DNA of 64,000 bases from Amoebophrya sp. A120 (Eukaryota; Protista; Dinoflagellata), in contig CAJINV010000005.1 in assembly GCA_905178155.1 (NCBI GenBank), forward strand, positions 8,182,515 through 8,246,514. The letters are read 5' to 3'. Numbering within the stretch: the first letter of the stretch is position 1; each line of letters begins with the position of its first letter. Under the pieces are notes generated by a model. It worked only from the letters and a program-made list of their open reading frames with translations. It did no database searches and had not been told where the DNA came from. Below are positions 53,630-62,292 of this stretch, in pieces. The translations under genes and the position numbers were made by a program.

Positions 53630-56600
53630 ATGTTCGTCCCCGGGCGGCGCATTGCGCCGAACACGAAGCAGGAGGCGCAGATTTTGCTGCAGTTTCAGAA
53701 AACCTTATTGAACGCCTCCTGTCCCGCTATGAACAACATTGGGAAGGAAATTTCCCGGAAAAAAAAGGAGTTCGTCTTAGCACTCCACGAATTAGACTAC
53801 GACGAGGGGAGGAAGATGGAATTTGTACAAAAGGAGAAAGAAGAGGAGGAGCGGAAACTATTAAACAGCAAAAACCTCGTCTCCTCGGTGGCCACCAGTT
53901 CTTGTGCCAGCCCTGGGGCGGGAGGAGAAGAACCTCCTCCTGTGAAAACGAAGACGAGCTCCTCGAGCAACGAGAATAACAGTCCCTCCTCGACGAAGTC
54001 CTCATTCCCCGAGACCTACCTGATCATGATCAAAGTGAACAAGGACGAAACGCTGCTCCGGTTAGCGAAAGAGCAGCAGTTCCCCCGCGGTTGCCCGTTT
54101 TTGTTCTTCCCGAAAGAGAACAGAGTACTCTCTTTCGGTTTCTACCCGAAATTTGGACACGACTACAACGTGGAGAAGGATCGAAAATCCGGGAAAAACA
54201 GAATCAAACCTGTCGTGCAAAAATCGAACGAATTTGCGGAGTTTTTTGAAGAAGCGTTGAAGCAGAAAACGGTCGACTCGGACGACGAAAATTTACGACT
54301 TTTAGTCGACCCGAGGGTTAAGCAGAATAAGGAGGAGGAGAAGAAGATCCGGATGTTTTGCCTGAAAAAATACTCGGGGTTTCTCTCCATTTTGATCGCG
54401 TGGGAGTGGAAAAAGGAATTCTTCTACACAGTGACCTCGAAGAACTCCGCGGATTTTTTCGTCGACACAAAACTCCAACAGCAATTCATCAACGGTTTTG
54501 ATAACAACACGAATTTCGTGAAAATCGGCCTAGAGCAGTGGCGGAATTACATGTCCGACGCGCGATGTAAGAATTCTTGGGTGAAGCGGGAGCAGTTGTT
54601 TATCCAACACCTCGCGAAGCAAAATCTCTGTTGCACGGCTATGACCCGCTCAGGTGTTACAATCTCAAGCGTTACAATAGAATCTGAGATCTGTCTTGCA
54701 TGATGAGCATGACAGACTCGCATAGCGTTCCACTTTCTGCAATACAGATTTCGCCAGATTGTAGTAGGGTTTGGGGCTCCGGAACTTCTCATGCGCAGTC
54801 CTATGAGGGTTGGCCAGATCATGCAATCTTGCATCACAGATTTCCATACTCTATTGTAACGTTTGAGATTGTAACACCTGAGCAGGTTATAACGGCGGAA
54901 GTGATGAGCAAGCAGGACGAGACCCACGGCACGAAGGTATCAACTGCAAATATGTCTGGGTCTGGAAAATAAATGCAAGCTTGTCATGCTTGTCTGGCAT
55001 AACTCAGAAATCTGTGCTGCATGAGCAGGAAAAGGGCCTCTTGCCTGTCATGGAAAAACGCAGTTTGTCATGCGGAGAGCGAAATATAAAGGAGCCCAGA
55101 AACTTGTCATGCGTTGCTGCGTATTGCAGTGCGCCCACCAGACACAGCCTAGCATCACAAGTTTCCAGACCCAGACATAATTGCAATGCATAGGAGGTGA
55201 AGCAGGACGATATGGTGATCACGGGCGTGTTTGAGGGTGCGAAAGATCACGAGAAGGAAAAACACAGGCTGTCCACCCCGAAATCGGTGTTAGACATGGT
55301 GAAATTCTGCAACGAATGGAATCTGCCGTGTCAAAAGGTGGTTGGGATCGGGGAGTCGTTAAATGAAATCAACCGGTTTTACAACAAATTGTGGGAAAAG
55401 AAGGACTTCATGACGGACGAGAAATTTGAGGAGTTTTTGGAAAAGGAGGCGAAAGCGACGCTCGGGTTTTACGAGAAATTTATCCTCGGGATGATGAACA
55501 TCAACAGTGGTAGCTGCAATAGTAATCTGAAAACAACCAGCGGCGCTGGTGCACAACAGAACAACAAGCAAGCCTCCTCCTCGTCCTCCAGTTCGAGAGT
55601 AAATCCGAATGATGGCAAAAATCCAGACCAGCAGAACAAAGTACAACTAGACAAGCACTGTTTCGTCCACCACAAGGACATTCTGGGCGATTGCCTAGAG
55701 GGGGTGATCATCATCGTTCAAACCACCACCGGCGACATCAAGTCCATGCGGAAGTTGAAGTTTCCGAATTACATGTGCCGGATCCAACTGCGGGAGTGGA
55801 TGAAAAACTTGAAACAGACGGCGAACTTCGCGCTGCAAAAGGGGAAAAATTCGCCGAATATGATAACTTCGTGTATCGCGAACAAAATCTATCCTGAGTA
55901 AAAATCCCCCCTCCCCATATCGAAAAGGTATGCTTCCGAAAATTTGCGTTGCTGATTTGAGGTCGCAAATCACATTTGTATTGCAAGAAGACAAGGGCAG
56001 AAGCTTCCGCCCCACTATGGAAGCGATTTGTCATGCTGCTGGCCCTAAAAGTGACCCGCTTGCCATGCTGAACAACTAGACACATACGCCCCTAACTAGC
56101 CTGGAGATCTGCCCGAAATGCCTCTCTGCAATACAAAGCTGATCTGTGTACGCAAATCCAGCATCAGAGACTTCCTTTTGATATGGGGAGGGGGGATTTT
56201 TCCTTTTGATAAAATCTCCACTTTCACCATGAAGTGGTGCGCCACGGAGATGGGCAGAAAGTACTGGCTATCCTGTGCAAAAGTATAGGATTCGTAGTAA
56301 TTGCAGTCATGCATTACAAGTTTCTTTCGTAAGGTAAATCCGCATGACAAATTTTATTTCTCATGCTAAGGGAATTTGTAATGCATTTATACGAGTACGA
56401 TACTTTTGCAATGCATACTGGCGGGCGTGGCTGTACCGGGCCTGTGTGTTGCACTACGAGAACAGCATCAGCAGTATCGTTTCGAGCGGGAATTCTTTGG
56501 TAAAAAACCACATCGCGCTGGCGGAAGCCACGGAACACCAGTGTCAGAAGGAACGGGAGGGAAAAGAGAAGGAAAGGGAAGAGAAAGAGAAAGAAAATAA

Positions 56601-59600
56601 ACAGAATCTACTTGATGTTCCAAGTAGTACTTTATCGGGTGATAAGAACAAAAGCAGCACAAATAAAGTCACAACTGTTGTTGTTCCGGCACCGAACACA
56701 GCCCTGGAGACGAAATTCCGGGCGATTTTCGAACAGAAGTTGAGGGACCCGAAGTTGTCGAAACTCCTGATCTTGGTTGTCGGCCCAGTCGGCTACGGGA
56801 AGTCGAGCTTTGCCCGTCAGATGGTGGAGAAGTTGAATAACAATATTTTTAATAACCAGAGAAGTTGCACTTCTTCTTCTGCCGATCAGAACAGCAAAGA
56901 CGACCAGAATTATTGTACCACAGCTTCTTATGGATGTGTCAGGATCGAAATCGACAAAATCGAAAAACTTGTGATGCATAAAATGTAGAGCACTGAAGGC
57001 CTGTATTGGGGAGCAGGCATATGAGGCCGATTGTAAGCCTGTTTAGGGGTATGCAATGCGCTGCCAGAGTAGCATGACAGGAGCAGTCTTCTTTCCCTAA
57101 ACAGCATGACAGACTGGATTTTGGTGCTCCCGAAATTTGTCATGCGCCACTCGAAAACTGAGGTTCCAACTGACATCGATTTTGTGCATCACAAATTTTT
57201 CGATTTTATTGTGAATTTCGATTTTGACACTCCCATACTTCTACTCTGATCCACATCGACGGTGATGATTTGGGGCTGGTGAACCACAATGTTAAAGCGG
57301 GGGCACCATCATCATCTGCAAGAACTTCATCAGACGACAACGGCGCTCCTGCAACAGCGAATTATGCAGCAGGGATAAAATCGACTTCTGGTTCTGCCTC
57401 GTCCGGAGGTTTATCCCTGTCCAAGATCGCCAACCGGCTGAAGCACGAGCGGCAGGAGCTCACTTTCTTCCGGTTAGTGCAAGCCATGACGGAAAAGAAA
57501 GTCCCGGTGCTCTCTTGCGGTGGCGTATCAAGTGCAAAAATGTCTGGGTCTGGACGGGTGCAACTTGTGATGCGCATTTCACAACACACAAAAATCTCTC
57601 ACGCATAGGCAGCAAAAGGCGCCCACCTCCTGTAACCAAACTAGTGGATTTGTCATGCGGATTGGGCAATGCGGAAGGTCCTCGAAATCTGTCATGCTAG
57701 GGCTTCCATGACAGACCTTCTGCGTCATGCAAAAACAGCATGACAAAAATCTGCATTCTTCCAGACCCAGACGTATTTGCATGTGATACGGCGGGGTGCT
57801 GTACGACACCGGCAGCTCGAACGGCAATGCGGGGTTGAACGCCCCTACGGCCGGCGGGCAGACCGGCTCCGTTTCCACGTTTGAAATGCGGCTGCGAAAC
57901 TGGTTTCGGTCCGTCTTGCCGCAGTTTGAATTGAAAATCGTGACATTTTTACCGGTATCAAATGCAAATATGTCTGGGTCTGGAAGGATGCAAGGTTTGT
58001 CATGCTTGTCTGGCATAACTGAAGAGTTTGTGATGCGTGTCCAAGAACAGACCCTTTTGCTTGTCATGCAAAACGCATTTTGTCATGCGGAAAGCGCAAC
58101 ATTAAGCAGCGCAAATATGATTTCTCATGCTTGGCTGTGGATTACAGAGAAATCACTACTCAAAACTCAGCTTTACAATACAAGTTTCCAGACCCTCGAG
58201 ACATATTTGCAATGCATAACCGGGCGGGTATTATTCCGAGCGGGTGTTGCAGCCGAAAGGGCCGAAAAGTGGTTCTACTTCGGTACATCAGGAAGTAGTG
58301 AACAACAACGCGTGGGAAATCATGCAGAAGGGCTTTGTCAAAGACTACGCGAATTCAAAAACCGTACAGGAGACGGTGCGGAGCCGGTTGGCTCGCGGGG
58401 AGTGGGAGTTGGAGGATAAGCACGACGAGGATCTTCACGAAGAAAGTGAGGAAGAAGCTCTTCCTGGTGTTTCTGTTGATTCAAGCAAGGACGAACGCAT
58501 GATGAGGACAAACAACTCGGAAAAGAACGACCAGCAACAAGGTGCACAACCTGTCCGCGTCAAAAGCTACGACAAAATCTCCACCTCGGCGTCTCACCGA
58601 ACGGAGCGGGATCGGGATAACGCTGCTCGTGACCACCGTGATAAAAATTATGCTCGTGACAATGCTCGTGACCACCACCGTGATAGAAATGCCCGTGAAG
58701 GCCGCGACCGGGACCGTGATCATACGTCTCGCGACCGTAGTCCGAGGAGGAACTACACCCGGTTTGCGATGGAGAATGACGAAAGGGAAAAGCCGGGGAC
58801 GAAAAGTGTGATCAGCTTCAGCAAAGCGTTGGAACAGGAATTCGTGAGCAAAATCGTGAAGCTCAGCTCCAAAAACGTGCGGTTCGCCAAGAAGTTGATG
58901 CTGGACTCGGATTTCGTCTATCATTTATGCATTGCAAAAGTATCGTGCTTCTAGTATAAATCGCATGACAAAGTTCCTCAGCATGAAAAATAGAACTTCT
59001 CATGCTGATTTACCCTTGGGAATCAGATTTGTCATGTATATCTGCGATTAGTACGAGCGCGATGCTTTTGCATTTGATATCACTACCCCCGGATCGAGTG
59101 GAACGAGAAGAAGAACAAATTGAGTCCCATCGACTGGGACGTGTGTCTGAAGGATGTATACGGCGAGTGTCAGCCGGTGGTGGTGGGAAATAAAAGGACT
59201 ACCTCAAGCAAAGAAAAGGAAAACAAAGAGGACGGAACGAAGAATAAGAACGAAAGCAAGGAGAAGGAGAACAATAAAGGGGATACAGCTAAATTTGAAG
59301 ATACAACTGTCCCGAAGTTGTACAACGGCGTGAAGGAGTTTGAGTTGAACCACCTAGCCCGGATTTTTAATACAGGAGCCGCGTCTAGAGGTAGAACCAC
59401 ATCCACGTTGCAGCAGCAGGGGAAGGACCTTCATAGTAAGACTGGGGCGACAACGTCTTCTCATGCAGGGGCTGCTGCAGCTGCATCAACAGCAACAGCA
59501 TCTAGTTCTTCTTCCAACAAAATCACCACCACTGAGAACACCAATTCCACCACCCTCTACCGCTTCCACCAGATCCGGTGCTTGGCCTATGTCGCTCCGC

Positions 59601-62292
59601 AATGTGCAGCAGCTGGGAAGAAGATAAAGAGCAAACCTGAGAATTTGGAGCACGAGAAGAAAACCCCCGTTGACCACCACGACAAGTTCAACTCGAACAC
59701 ATACCGCGACGAGCACTTCGACGTGTTACAACAATTCGGGCACATCACGCTGCACTTCGGCGATTTTTACCTCAACGAGAAACTCATCGAGAAATTTTTC
59801 AAACCCTTTGAAAGCTGCGGAAATTTCAATTTGGGGTCCTCGATGATGCCGACGGCCACTTCCTCCTCCGGGGCGGGGGAGATAGTGAGCAACAAGACGA
59901 ACAACCAAGGCTGTTTGAAGCTTCACGGGCTCTACTGCCGCTTTCCGAAGCAGATGAACTTGTCGTTCGTCGCGGTTTTTTTTCAGGACAAGGAACAAAG
60001 GGACACCAGCATGACAAACGCCAAAGGTCTTGCGGATTATCAAATGTAAAAATGTCTGGGTCTGGAACAATGCAACTTGTGATGCTGCGTCTGCATTATC
60101 CAAAAATCTGTATTGCATGAACAGCAAAAGAGGTCTGGTTTTGGCCACGGCAAGAGGGCATTTCTCATGCGGTATAGGCATCAGAAAGCCCTCACAAGAT
60201 CTGTGATGCTAGGGCATGCATCGCAGACATCAGGAGTCATGCAAAATGTGCATGACAAACCTTGCATCCTTCCAGACCCAGACATTTTTGCATTTGATAC
60301 GGAAAACGGCATGACAAATAGCCGTCTCTTCGGCCACATCACGGTCGACGTGGGGAAGTATTCACCGAAACACGTGGCGAAATTATCCGAGGCAATGTTC
60401 GGCGAGGATAAAGTCGCGGGGAGGAGTGTCGTCACGATTGATGGCGAGGAGTATGACGTGAAGGACATGCTGTCTTCCAACGTGATTGTGAACATCTACA
60501 CCTTGTTCTGCGTGGCGAGCAACCGAAAGCCGTCCTGTGCCCACTCGGGGATCGAAGCGCCGGGGAAGACGAAAATTGTGGCTGGATTACCGGGGAGTGT
60601 GGAGGAGAAAATTCAGCACTTGCTGGAATTTTTGGGGATGAACAAGAAGAACCTGATTTGTGCGAAGAGCGACAAAGACGACAAGGACAACGTTGAAGAA
60701 ACAGCTGCTGCTGGTGCTCCGGCTTCCTCTTCCAGCCATGCACAGGTATCGGTTGACAACAAGGTAGATAATGAATCTGTGCCGAAAGTAGAGCAGGAAA
60801 CCGTGGAAATAAACAAAGAGAAAGTAGAACCTCCTGCTTCGAGGGATGGAGAAAATAAAACCGAGGAGAAAGATCACAATACTTCCTCATCTCCACAACA
60901 ACAAAACTCGGGTAAAAAAGCTGACAACACCTCCTCATCTCCAGAACAGAACTCGGGTAAAAATAAAGCCAAACTACACGACCAGAGCTTACACGACAAA
61001 AATTTACTCGTCCAGAGTCCCTTAGCGAGTGAGAAGCAGAACCACGTGGACCATCATCTGGCGAATAGGAAGGCGGTATCACATGCAAAAATGTCTGGGT
61101 CTGGAAGAATGCGCGATCTGTCATGCTGCTTTTCCATGACCCATGGGGTCTGGAATGCAGGACCTAGCATGACAGATTCTGTGCGATCTCTCTCATGCCT
61201 ATCCTGCATGAGAAAGTCCCTCCCGACTTTGTCAAAACTGGACGACTTTTGGTACTTATGCAACACAGATTTTTGCATGTTTCAGATTTAGCATGACATC
61301 TTCCAGACCGAGACATTTTTACATTTGATAGGCGGAGCCACCAGCGTATGACGAATCGGTGTTGGATTTTGGGGAGGACGACGACTTGGACATGAACGAA
61401 TTTATCAGCAGCAATTTGGATCACAGCGCCCCGGTTTCCGGGAAGGTAGCGGAAAAGGAGAAGGGTCTGGAGGTGGAGAAACATCAAAAGCCGCGGCGGC
61501 ACAGCGACAGCATTGACAGTGACATGATCAGCAGTAAAATTCCACTAGTGTCCTCTTCCAAAAATCATAACCAGAAGAAAGACCAAGACGTATCAACTGT
61601 AAAAATGTCTGGGTCTGGAAGAATGCAAGATTTGTGATGCAGTTTTTCCATGACCCATGGGGTCTGGAATGCAGCACCTAGCATGACAAACGCTGTGAGG
61701 TGTCTATCATGCCTATTCTGCATGAGAAACTCGCTGCCAAACTGGTCAAAAGTGGCCATCTTTTGGTAATCATGCAACACAAATTTTTGCATGATCCAGA
61801 TTCAGCATGACAAGTTGCAATCTTCCAGACCCAGACATTTTTACATTTGATAAGACGACAGGGACGACGATATCCTGTCCTCCTCTCCGTCTCTGTCCCG
61901 AAACAACCGGGGCAAGCTGAGTCCACCGAACCTCTTATCCTGAGTAGAAAACGTCGCCGCCTAATATTCAAGATGGGGAATATCATGATAAGTGCAGATG
62001 TAATATGCCGTGTCGTGGTTCTTGCGGTGAGCTCGTCTAGCCGCATCACAAGCTGTTATACCGCCTTATCCTGACTAGCGCATCACAGATCTCCAAAGTC
62101 GATGTCAAGACGCTTTCTTATGTATGAGGCTGCGTACTATTACATAGATACACGCTATTGAGAGAGAGAGTTCAGATTTGCATGACAACAACTTTGGTAC
62201 TATCGTGGCGACGTTTTTGCGCAGGATACTTCTCCTCCGACTCGGAGCTCTCGAGGCAGATCAGGAAGAGACGAAAGATCGTGGAAAAGTGA
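53630..62292 (+). CDS. Trl1-like trifunctional RNA repair enzyme: ATP-dependent RNA ligase + P-loop polynucleotide kinase + 2H cyclic phosphodiesterase; 12 introners
   Basis: In order: KKYSG (54365), TSKNS (54434), AEVM (54895), EGVII (55698), KLKF (55752), GPVGYGKS (56782), HIDGD (57252), HITL (59741), HITV (60335). Frame continuous to TGA 62290-62292. Confidence 0.75.
54640..54891. mobile_element. Introner family F
   Basis: Long TIR; TSD ACGGC. Confidence 0.9.
54938..55192. mobile_element. Introner family A
   Basis: TIR; TSD GAAGG/GGAGG. Confidence 0.9.
55890..56211. mobile_element. Introner family C
   Basis: TIR; TSD AAATC. Confidence 0.9.
56269..56417. mobile_element. Introner family E
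   Basis: TIR; TSD CTGGC. Confidence 0.9.
56929..57237. mobile_element. Introner family G (opposite orientation)
   Basis: TIR; TSD CTTCT. Confidence 0.9.
57526..57788. mobile_element. Introner family A
   Basis: TIR; TSD TGGCG/CGGCG. Confidence 0.9.
57956..58218. mobile_element. Introner family A
   Basis: TIR; TSD ACCGG. Confidence 0.9.
58926..59079. mobile_element. Introner family E
   Basis: TIR; TSD TCATT/TCACT. Confidence 0.9.
60038..60299. mobile_element. Introner family A
   Basis: TIR; TSD CGGAT/CGGAA. Confidence 0.9.
61077..61330. mobile_element. Introner family A
   Basis: TIR; TSD GGCGG. Confidence 0.9.
61591..61852. mobile_element. Introner family A
   Basis: TIR; TSD AGACG. Confidence 0.9.
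61936..62228. mobile_element. Introner family B
   Basis: TIR; TSD CCTCT/CTTCT. Confidence 0.85.

Follow-up and report, generated by a model that had tools for sequence, protein, structure and literature searches.

The gene and its splicing

Amoebophrya sp. A120 is a syndinean parasite in whose genome, as in that of strain A25, more than 60% of the introns are non-canonical, and many of these introns are introner elements, which carry both inverted and direct repeats (PMC7789003). The window considered here is the whole stretch of 64,000 nucleotides (nt) at C5:8182515-8246514 of the 115.5-Mb A120 genome, and it contains a gene, interrupted by such introners, that probably encodes a heal-and-seal RNA ligase of the Trl1 kind, in which ligase (LIG), kinase (KIN) and cyclic phosphodiesterase (CPD) modules follow one another in a single polypeptide.

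Across positions 53630-62292 of the plus strand, open segments are separated by elements that bear terminal inverted repeats (TIRs) and measure 154-327 nt, and the 13 exons, when joined in phase, give 5565 nt of coding sequence with no stop codon before the one at 62290-62292. The 12 introners counted in a preliminary description, which was made from the sequence alone, are all present, and each of the 12 introns has TAT...ATA TIRs and flanking direct repeats of about 5 nt.

Nine of the removals are seen directly. A single 5.5-kb contig from runs X1 and X4, whose only label is "RNA?" and whose contigs were mapped on positions 54500-60499, spans nine joints from exons 1/2 to exon 10, with the elements removed exactly (skips of 257, 260, 327, 154, 314, 268, 268, 159 and 267 nt). 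The two runs hold 0.60-0.62 of the sampled words, which is near the share of exons that we estimate for the stretch. The gene is real, transcribed and correctly spliced. The remaining three introners, numbers 10 to 12, are presumably removed in the same manner, given that they share the element-plus-5-nt geometry and that the reading frame continues unbroken through the joints. The raw RNA runs X9 and X10 placed only 2-3 reads on the stretch and give no information on the RNA ends.

All 12 introns fit the pattern N-TAT...ATA-NNNN, i.e., the element plus 5 nt, with 1 nt taken before the TAT and 4 nt after the ATA. The register can be fixed through the introns with degenerate direct repeats, in which the offsets allowed relative to the TAT run from -4 to 0 (intron 6), are either -1 or 0 (intron 8) and run from -5 to -1 (intron 9), and since -1/+4 is the only offset common to the three, it must be the register of splicing. 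The splice sites are set, therefore, by the geometry of the element and not by sequence signals. Intron 2, which reads GT..AG, was considered as a spliceosomal intron and rejected, since it obeys the -1/+4 register like the others and owes its GT to a G that precedes the TAT by chance.

Introners 4 and 8, which come from a single family and are inserted in opposite orientations, are spliced out alike. Strong hairpins are predicted for introners 8 and 7 taken with short flanks (z -6.15 and -3.29, respectively). A second set of opposite orientations from one family is found within the same gene, where the introners at 61076-61334 and 61590-61856 are set against those at 57525-57792 and 60037-60303.

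Catalytic motifs and family membership

The nine motifs named in the preliminary description (three sets, for ligase, kinase and phosphodiesterase) are all present on the plus strand, in the order that it gave, and can be read only when the introns are removed (Table 1). The exons of the window gene were searched individually, and the orthologue from strain AT5 was used as a stand-in for the whole protein.

A phmmer search with exon 1 against 1.84 billion representative proteins returned 97 matches at E <= 1e-3, the best of which is Amoebophrya sp. AT5.2 g7127.t1, a protein of 1065 aa. In tblastn, this protein matches every exon of the window gene in order and keeps every catalytic motif, and it is taken as the orthologue because of this collinearity. 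The A25 orthologue is a split gene model, deposited as two proteins, so that the lineage is kept in A120, A25 and AT5. The LIG-KIN-CPD order within one polypeptide is supported by the contig from exons 1/2 to 10, by the continuous phase and by the collinear 1065-aa orthologue. The difference in length between this orthologue and the 1854 aa of the A120 protein is accounted for by low-complexity inserts in exons 3, 5, 6, 8, 9 and 10. One of these, an RD-rich block at 58590-58760, was considered as a link between the enzyme and splicing and was rejected, given that it is missing from both the A25 and the AT5 orthologues.

The remaining matches of exon 1 are mostly marine metagenome proteins of 750-1000 aa, together with one protein from the choanoflagellate Didymoeca costata. 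In an alignment of 52 family members, the residues K167, S169, G170, K210, E250, H259, E420, G421, K460, K462, K615, D634, R751, H887/T889 and H956/T958 are invariant or conserved in at least 90% of the sequences, and the conserved positions comprise the lysine of KxSG, the SKNS motif, the Glu and His of motif III, the EG and KxK motifs, the P-loop Lys, D-G-D, GGG, two Arg and the two HxT motifs. The motifs that carry these conserved residues are retained in the exons of the window gene.

A profile built without any Amoebophrya sequence matches exons 1, 3, 5, 6, 8 and 10 collinearly (106.5, 84.4, 33.1, 26.7, 30.6 and 10.4 bits, respectively), and the pattern lies far beyond chance. The Pfam family PF09511 (RNA_lig_T4_1) is found in 8 of the 52 members, in one of them above the cut-off.

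Several other searches returned little. Scans of the whole genome with PF09511 and PF08303 gave nothing, a weak blank for PF09511, which is also silent in control genomes. Nothing relevant was found when exons 1, 3 and 9 were compared with the PDB by phmmer, no usable match to exon 3 was found in the ESM Atlas, and a protein search with the 52-member alignment returned only two Amoebophrya proteins.

Predicted folds of the three domains

An AlphaFold (AF2) model of the AT5 orthologue, built with the 52-member alignment, has a mean pLDDT of 78 and a pTM of 0.80. In a Foldseek search of the PDB with this model, the eight matches at E <= 1e-3 are all fungal Trl1, i.e., the LIG-KIN structure 9r3w (1.9e-9), entry 6u05 (4.8e-7) and five LIG chains from four entries. 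Entry 6u05, a 413-residue "Fungal RNA Kinase", is one which we take to be a KIN-CPD fragment of Trl1.

In the structural comparison by VIA, the ligase domain of the AT5 model aligns with Trl1-LIG at Z 16.8 and a root-mean-square deviation of 3.8 A, with 332 of 383 residues aligned. Residues 44-555 of the model correspond to 37-405 of 6n0t, and the helical C-terminal domain is included in this correspondence. The match with T4 Rnl1, at Z 16.0, extends over 246 residues only. The region that follows (residues 598-849 of the model) has a P-loop kinase fold in which GPVGYGKS and HIDGD are conserved.

For the 2H phosphodiesterase, a model of the domain alone, made from a giant-virus member with the family alignment, reaches a pLDDT of 94.7. 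Its best Foldseek match is 6u05, followed by the catalytic domains of CNPase, and of the 48,161 chains searched with VIA, CNPase alone reaches Z >= 5 (6.8, over 123 aligned residues), while LigT, Arabidopsis CPDase, AKAP18, Usb1 and viral 2H enzymes lie at Z 3-4.

The architecture and the ligase fold, as modelled, are Trl1-like, and the healing modules would belong to the right superfamilies without being recognisably of the fungal subfamilies.

A probable tripartite heal-and-seal RNA ligase

The reading that we favour, with a probability of about 78%, is that the gene encodes, in A120, a tripartite RNA ligase of the heal-and-seal, Trl1 kind. Its N-terminal part would be an ATP-dependent ligase of the Rnl1/Trl1 fold, with the lysine to be adenylylated in KYSG, followed by SKNS, AEVM, EG...KxK and a Trl1-like helical C-terminal domain; the central part would be a P-loop module resembling polynucleotide kinases, with GYGKS, HIDGD and GGG; and the C-terminal part would be a 2H cyclic phosphodiesterase with two HxT motifs.

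If the protein works as Trl1 and the plant enzyme AtRNL do, an analogy from which we infer the activities, the end chemistry and the substrates, the 2',3'-cyclic phosphate would be opened to a 3'-OH and a 2'-phosphate, the 5'-OH would then be phosphorylated by the kinase module, and the ends would finally be sealed, leaving at the junction a 2'-phosphate for removal by Tpt1. The likeliest substrates are the tRNA halves produced by the tRNA splicing endonuclease and other RNA breaks, either programmed or accidental.

A number of observations weigh against this reading. The Pfam models of the Trl1 healing domains, PF08303 (tRNA_lig_kinase) and PF08302 (tRNA_lig_CPD), match none of the 52 family members, none of the exons of the window gene and nothing at this locus of the genome, and an exon-by-exon Pfam search found only a generic P-loop, with no match to the ligase, tRNA_lig_kinase or tRNA_lig_CPD. 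In a sequence comparison of the family profile with the PDB, the top matches are shikimate kinases and no Trl1 chain is present among the best 60 of 126 rows at E <= 1. The folds were modelled on the AT5 orthologue and on a giant-virus member and not on the window protein itself; the kinase aligns with adenylate kinases at about Z 12 and with Trl1-KIN at Z 10.8, and so shows no special closeness to the latter; and the structural scores of the CPD are modest (Z 6.8, Foldseek E 0.03). Finally, a complete RtcB and a second paralogue, both described below, could cover tRNA splicing in place of the window copy.

Given this, the preliminary identification as a ligase-kinase-phosphodiesterase holds for the order of the domains, the catalytic residues and the ligase and 2H folds, and is less certain for the kinase, which is no nearer to Trl1-KIN than to adenylate kinases. 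The Pfam models of the Trl1 kinase and CPD are not matched. Likewise, the comparison of predicted structures with Trl1, T4 Rnl1 and the 2H families, which it had proposed, agrees for the ligase and for the 2H domain and yields a generic P-loop fold for the kinase.

Other RNA-repair genes in the genome

A second tripartite ligase is encoded on the plus strand at C8:3607762-3614113, and its ligase exon, with 304.7 bits, is far nearer to the consensus of the family. It carries the motifs FFRKWSG, TSKNS, EGLV, KYKF, GYGKS, HIDGD, GGG, HMT and HVT, and its kinase region is broken up by three inverted-repeat elements that resemble introners. Trees built with FastTree do not settle whether the two A120 paralogues are sisters.

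The presence of RtcB, which the preliminary description had left to be checked, is confirmed by a full-length gene on the minus strand at C5:6115035-6117073, in five exon pieces that cover Pfam positions 1-426. A separate gene on the minus strand at C3:2821298-2825246 combines an RS-rich N-terminus, a P-loop that reads GLPGSGKST and a 2H domain in which HITL occurs twice and which matches PF08302 (E 4e-10), and it looks like a stand-alone kinase-CPD healing enzyme; an hhalign comparison of the family profile with its two CPD exons found no relation.

The 2'-phosphotransferase Tpt1 is needed after sealing of the Trl1 type, and a single copy is, to our knowledge, what most eukaryotes possess. 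In the A120 genome, no fewer than seven separate loci of the family Tpt1/KptA (PF01885) lie above the cut-off (Table 1), and a protein search with one of these open reading frames gave two close matches only. Two loci encode the catalytic subunit of the tRNA-intron endonuclease (C1:5114900 and C2:1929026). A single weak match to a KEN domain was also observed, at C5:130111. As far as can be read from its sequence, the genome carries both pathways of RNA ligation, that of RtcB and the 5'-phosphate pathway, the latter in duplicate.

Table 1. Features of the Trl1-like gene (positions of the window) and Tpt1 loci elsewhere in the A120 genome (positions on the contigs named)
Feature	Position	Strand	Remarks
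Whole Trl1-like gene	53630..62292	+	13 exons and 12 introner introns; coding sequence 5565 nt, 1854 aa plus stop
Exon 1	53630..54638	+	N-terminal ligase part; FPRGCP, FGFYPKF, motifs I and Ia; 106.5 bits, profile positions 49-161
KKYSG (motif I)	54365-54379	+	
TSKNS (motif Ia)	54434-54448	+	
Introner 1	54639..54895	+	257 nt; direct repeat ACGGC; 56-nt TIR; joint in X1/X4 contigs
AEVM (motif III)	54895-54906	+	first codon split by introner 1
Exon 2	54896..54936	+	motif III; conserved THG
Introner 2	54937..55196	+	260 nt; joint in contigs; reads GT..AG
Exon 3	55197..55888	+	motifs IV and V, PNYMCR; 84.4 bits, profile positions 202-349
EGVII (motif IV)	55698-55712	+	
KLKF (motif V)	55752-55763	+	
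Introner 3	55889..56215	+	327 nt; joint in contigs
Exon 4	56216..56267	+	52 nt; contig joints, AT5 orthologue match
Introner 4	56268..56421	+	154 nt; family of introner 8, reverse orientation; joint in contigs
Exon 5	56422..56927	+	end of helical ligase C-terminal domain, linker, kinase P-loop
GPVGYGKS (P-loop)	56782-56805	+	
Introner 5	56928..57241	+	314 nt; direct repeat CTTCT; joint in contigs
Exon 6	57242..57524	+	kinase HIDGD, ERQELT
HIDGD	57252-57266	+	
Introner 6	57525..57792	+	268 nt; joint in contigs
Exon 7	57793..57954	+	conserved GGG motif of the kinase completed across the junction
Introner 7	57955..58222	+	268 nt; direct repeat ACCGG; joint in contigs; hairpin z -3.29
Exon 8	58223..58924	+	kinase C-terminal part (RLARGEW, SKNVRFA); RD-rich insert at about 58590-58760
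Introner 8	58925..59083	+	159 nt; degenerate direct repeat that fixes the splice register; joint in contigs; hairpin z -6.15
Exon 9	59084..60036	+	low-complexity linker, FHQIR, first HxT
GHITL (first HxT)	59738-59752	+	
Introner 9	60037..60303	+	267 nt; joint in contigs
Exon 10	60304..61075	+	second HxT, end of 2H domain, low-complexity tail
GHITV (second HxT)	60332-60346	+	
Introner 10	61076..61334	+	259 nt; direct repeat GGCGG; presumably removed
Exon 11	61335..61589	+	acidic low-complexity tail
Introner 11	61590..61856	+	267 nt; direct repeat AGACG; presumably removed
Exon 12	61857..61934	+	frame continuity
Introner 12	61935..62232	+	298 nt; presumably removed
Exon 13	62233..62292	+	basic tail RKRRKIVEK, stop codon
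Tpt1 locus	C9:1384852		
Tpt1 locus	C9:1423008		
Tpt1 locus	C2:6482105-6484944		
Tpt1 locus	C17:1241462-1242355		
Tpt1 locus	C5:6895525-6896359		
Tpt1 locus	C14:480781-481968		
Tpt1 locus	C10:3867860-3869082		

Giant-virus relatives and the origin of the family

Viral homologues, the existence of which had been raised in the preliminary description, do occur, given that relatives are encoded on seven contigs of giant viruses, which come from GVMAG and IMG/VR and are up to 404 kb long, and at least four of the seven show all three sets of motifs. In the FastTree tree, the viral members are scattered through the family and Amoebophrya is nested among them, with weak support. The scatter of the viral members points to a viral origin for many of the metagenome relatives without names. 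A search of the literature found no paper describing this ligase-kinase-2H family in giant viruses.

An unlikely reading of this distribution is that the gene is part of a module for RNA repair that has passed between marine protists and giant viruses. Its main task would be to mend RNA, such as tRNA, cut in conflicts between virus and host or in other biological conflicts, and not the constitutive splicing of tRNA or mRNA. Apart from the scatter of the viral members, this would agree with the giant virus of a kinetoplastid that was reported with tRNA repair genes (PMC5871332), and with the availability of RtcB for the splicing of tRNA. On the other hand, the trees are unrooted, with long branches and compositional bias, and most members of the family are unnamed metagenome proteins whose hosts are not known. 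The 12 host introners and the conservation in three Amoebophrya strains also speak against it, and because of them any transfer must be old. Moreover, the roles in repair and in splicing are not mutually exclusive.

Does the ligase remove introners?

Distinctly improbable is the reading in which the introners are excised without the spliceosome and this ligase, or its paralogue, heals and seals the exons of the mRNA, with the junction 2'-phosphate being cleared by Tpt1. The corresponding mechanism, to which we give just as little credence, would have a hairpin-measuring endonuclease cut at a distance of 1 nt upstream of the TIR stem and of 4 nt downstream of it, either of the two Trl1-like ligases rejoin the exons and the expanded Tpt1 family clear the junctions.

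In favour of such a mechanism, splicing in this gene is free of signals and set by the geometry of the element, with -1/+4 alone fitting introns 6, 8 and 9, it acts on introners 4 and 8 of one family in both orientations, and the hairpins of the elements are strong (z -6.15 and -3.29). The genome is also unusually well stocked with candidate parts, as it has two tripartite ligases, a further kinase-CPD gene, RtcB and no fewer than seven loci for Tpt1, the last of these being a circumstantial point. In addition, no U1 small nuclear RNA (snRNA) was detected in either A25 or A120, and non-canonical splicing is acknowledged as an open question with regard to its mechanism (PMC7789003).

The distribution of the enzyme points the other way. 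The AT5 orthologue has all of the catalytic residues, though the introns of AT5 are 99.98% canonical, a figure that comes from predicted gene models (PMC7789003), and further relatives are found in giant viruses and in one choanoflagellate. The expectation of the preliminary description that the ligase would track introner-rich lineages fails on these grounds. It had also held that the proposal would fall if the enzyme were equally conserved in relatives without introners and bound only tRNA, and of this, the conservation in AT5 is what was found. Given the AT5 orthologue, the viral relatives, RtcB, the C8 paralogue and the C3 gene, the enzyme is neither unique nor confined to introner-rich strains, and with RtcB and a second paralogue present neither uniqueness nor co-occurrence points to the introners.

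Further points concern the cutting step and the spliceosome. No candidate endonuclease for the cutting of introners was identified, and the asymmetric cuts of 1 nt and 4 nt would fit poorly with the two-fold symmetric bulge-helix-bulge recognised by the tRNA endonuclease. The spliceosomal proteins are almost all present, as are most of the snRNAs (PMC7789003), and the raw RNA runs have almost no reads on the gene.

The idea is not new, as an endonuclease combined with a tRNA ligase has already been floated for the nonconventional introns of euglenids, which form hairpins and are also free of signals (Milanowski et al. 2014, PMC3935182). That proposal, which is itself no more than a proposal, concerns Euglena and not Amoebophrya, for which the genome paper favoured an altered spliceosome without U1 (PMC7789003). 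A role of the window ligase in the removal of introners is, given this, speculation for which there is no specific support.

Finally, it is very unlikely that the protein is not active as a ligase, i.e., a diverged paralogue that bears the motifs and has a structural or regulatory role, for which one could cite its far greater divergence from the family consensus (ligase exons at 105.6 and 89.9 bits, against 304.7 for the C8 paralogue) and its swelling by low-complexity inserts to 1854 aa, against 1065 in AT5, given that the motifs with the conserved catalytic residues of the family are kept in its exons, that the gene is transcribed and spliced correctly and that the lineage is retained in A120, A25 and AT5.

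Significance

Database entries call the Amoebophrya proteins of this lineage "unnamed protein product" and list no Pfam domain for them, and their recognition as Trl1-like heal-and-seal ligases fills this gap in annotation. The window gene is a previously unnamed addition to a known kind of enzyme, the tripartite heal-and-seal ligases, and with it a large tripartite family that is invisible to Pfam, and common to giant viruses and marine protists, is brought to light.

For the splicing of non-canonical introns, the analysis mainly brings caution, as the ligase is not specific to the strains that bear introners. It also supplies candidate parts for a non-spliceosomal model, namely the two ligase paralogues, the kinase-CPD gene, RtcB and the Tpt1 loci, together with the sharp -1/+4 rule. 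If the removal of introners by the ligase were true, splicing of the tRNA/HAC1 type would be the main route of mRNA splicing of a eukaryote, with tens of thousands of introners.

Comparison with known enzymes

The fungal Trl1 of S. cerevisiae, C. thermophilum and C. albicans (6n0t, 6n67, 9r3w and 6u05) has, like the window protein, the LIG-KIN-CPD order in one chain. It shares with the window family the lysine of KxxG, the EG...KxK motifs at the same spacing, the P-loop followed by an aspartate and the two HxT motifs, and both the adenylyltransferase and the helical C-terminal domain of Trl1-LIG superpose on the ligase domain predicted for the AT5 orthologue. Unlike that of the fungal enzyme, the kinase of the window family (HIDGD, GGG) is at least as similar to shikimate and adenylate kinases as it is to Trl1-KIN. 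The family also differs from fungal Trl1 in its conserved N-terminal element, FPRGFP/FGFYPKF, and the window protein does so in its 1854 aa with long low-complexity inserts and in having no match to the Pfam kinase and CPD models.

The plant ligase AtRNL is likewise tripartite, with a KxxG lysine for adenylylation, a P-loop with an aspartate as the general base and two HxT motifs (PMC3964908). It shares this plan and these motifs with the window family and is itself very divergent in sequence from fungal Trl1.

The nucleotidyltransferase core is common to the window family and T4 Rnl1 (2c5u and 5tt6; Z 16.0, with PF09511 found in 8 of 52 members). The T4 enzyme differs in that only 246 residues align and the C-terminal domain is another one, and healing in T4 is carried out by a separate Pnkp with a 3'-phosphatase instead of a 2H CPD.

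The nearest relative of the 2H model is the catalytic domain of mouse CNPase, which also has two HxT motifs (Z 6.8, 123 residues). Unlike CNPase and other 2H phosphoesterases, the 2H domain of the window family is fused to a ligase and a kinase, and the scores of the comparison are modest.

In the relative from Didymoeca costata (998 aa), the same type of ligase domain is fused to an AAA_33 kinase and to a 2H-SAK "Swiss Army Knife" domain. Given this fusion, the ligase module is one that recombines with alternative healing domains.

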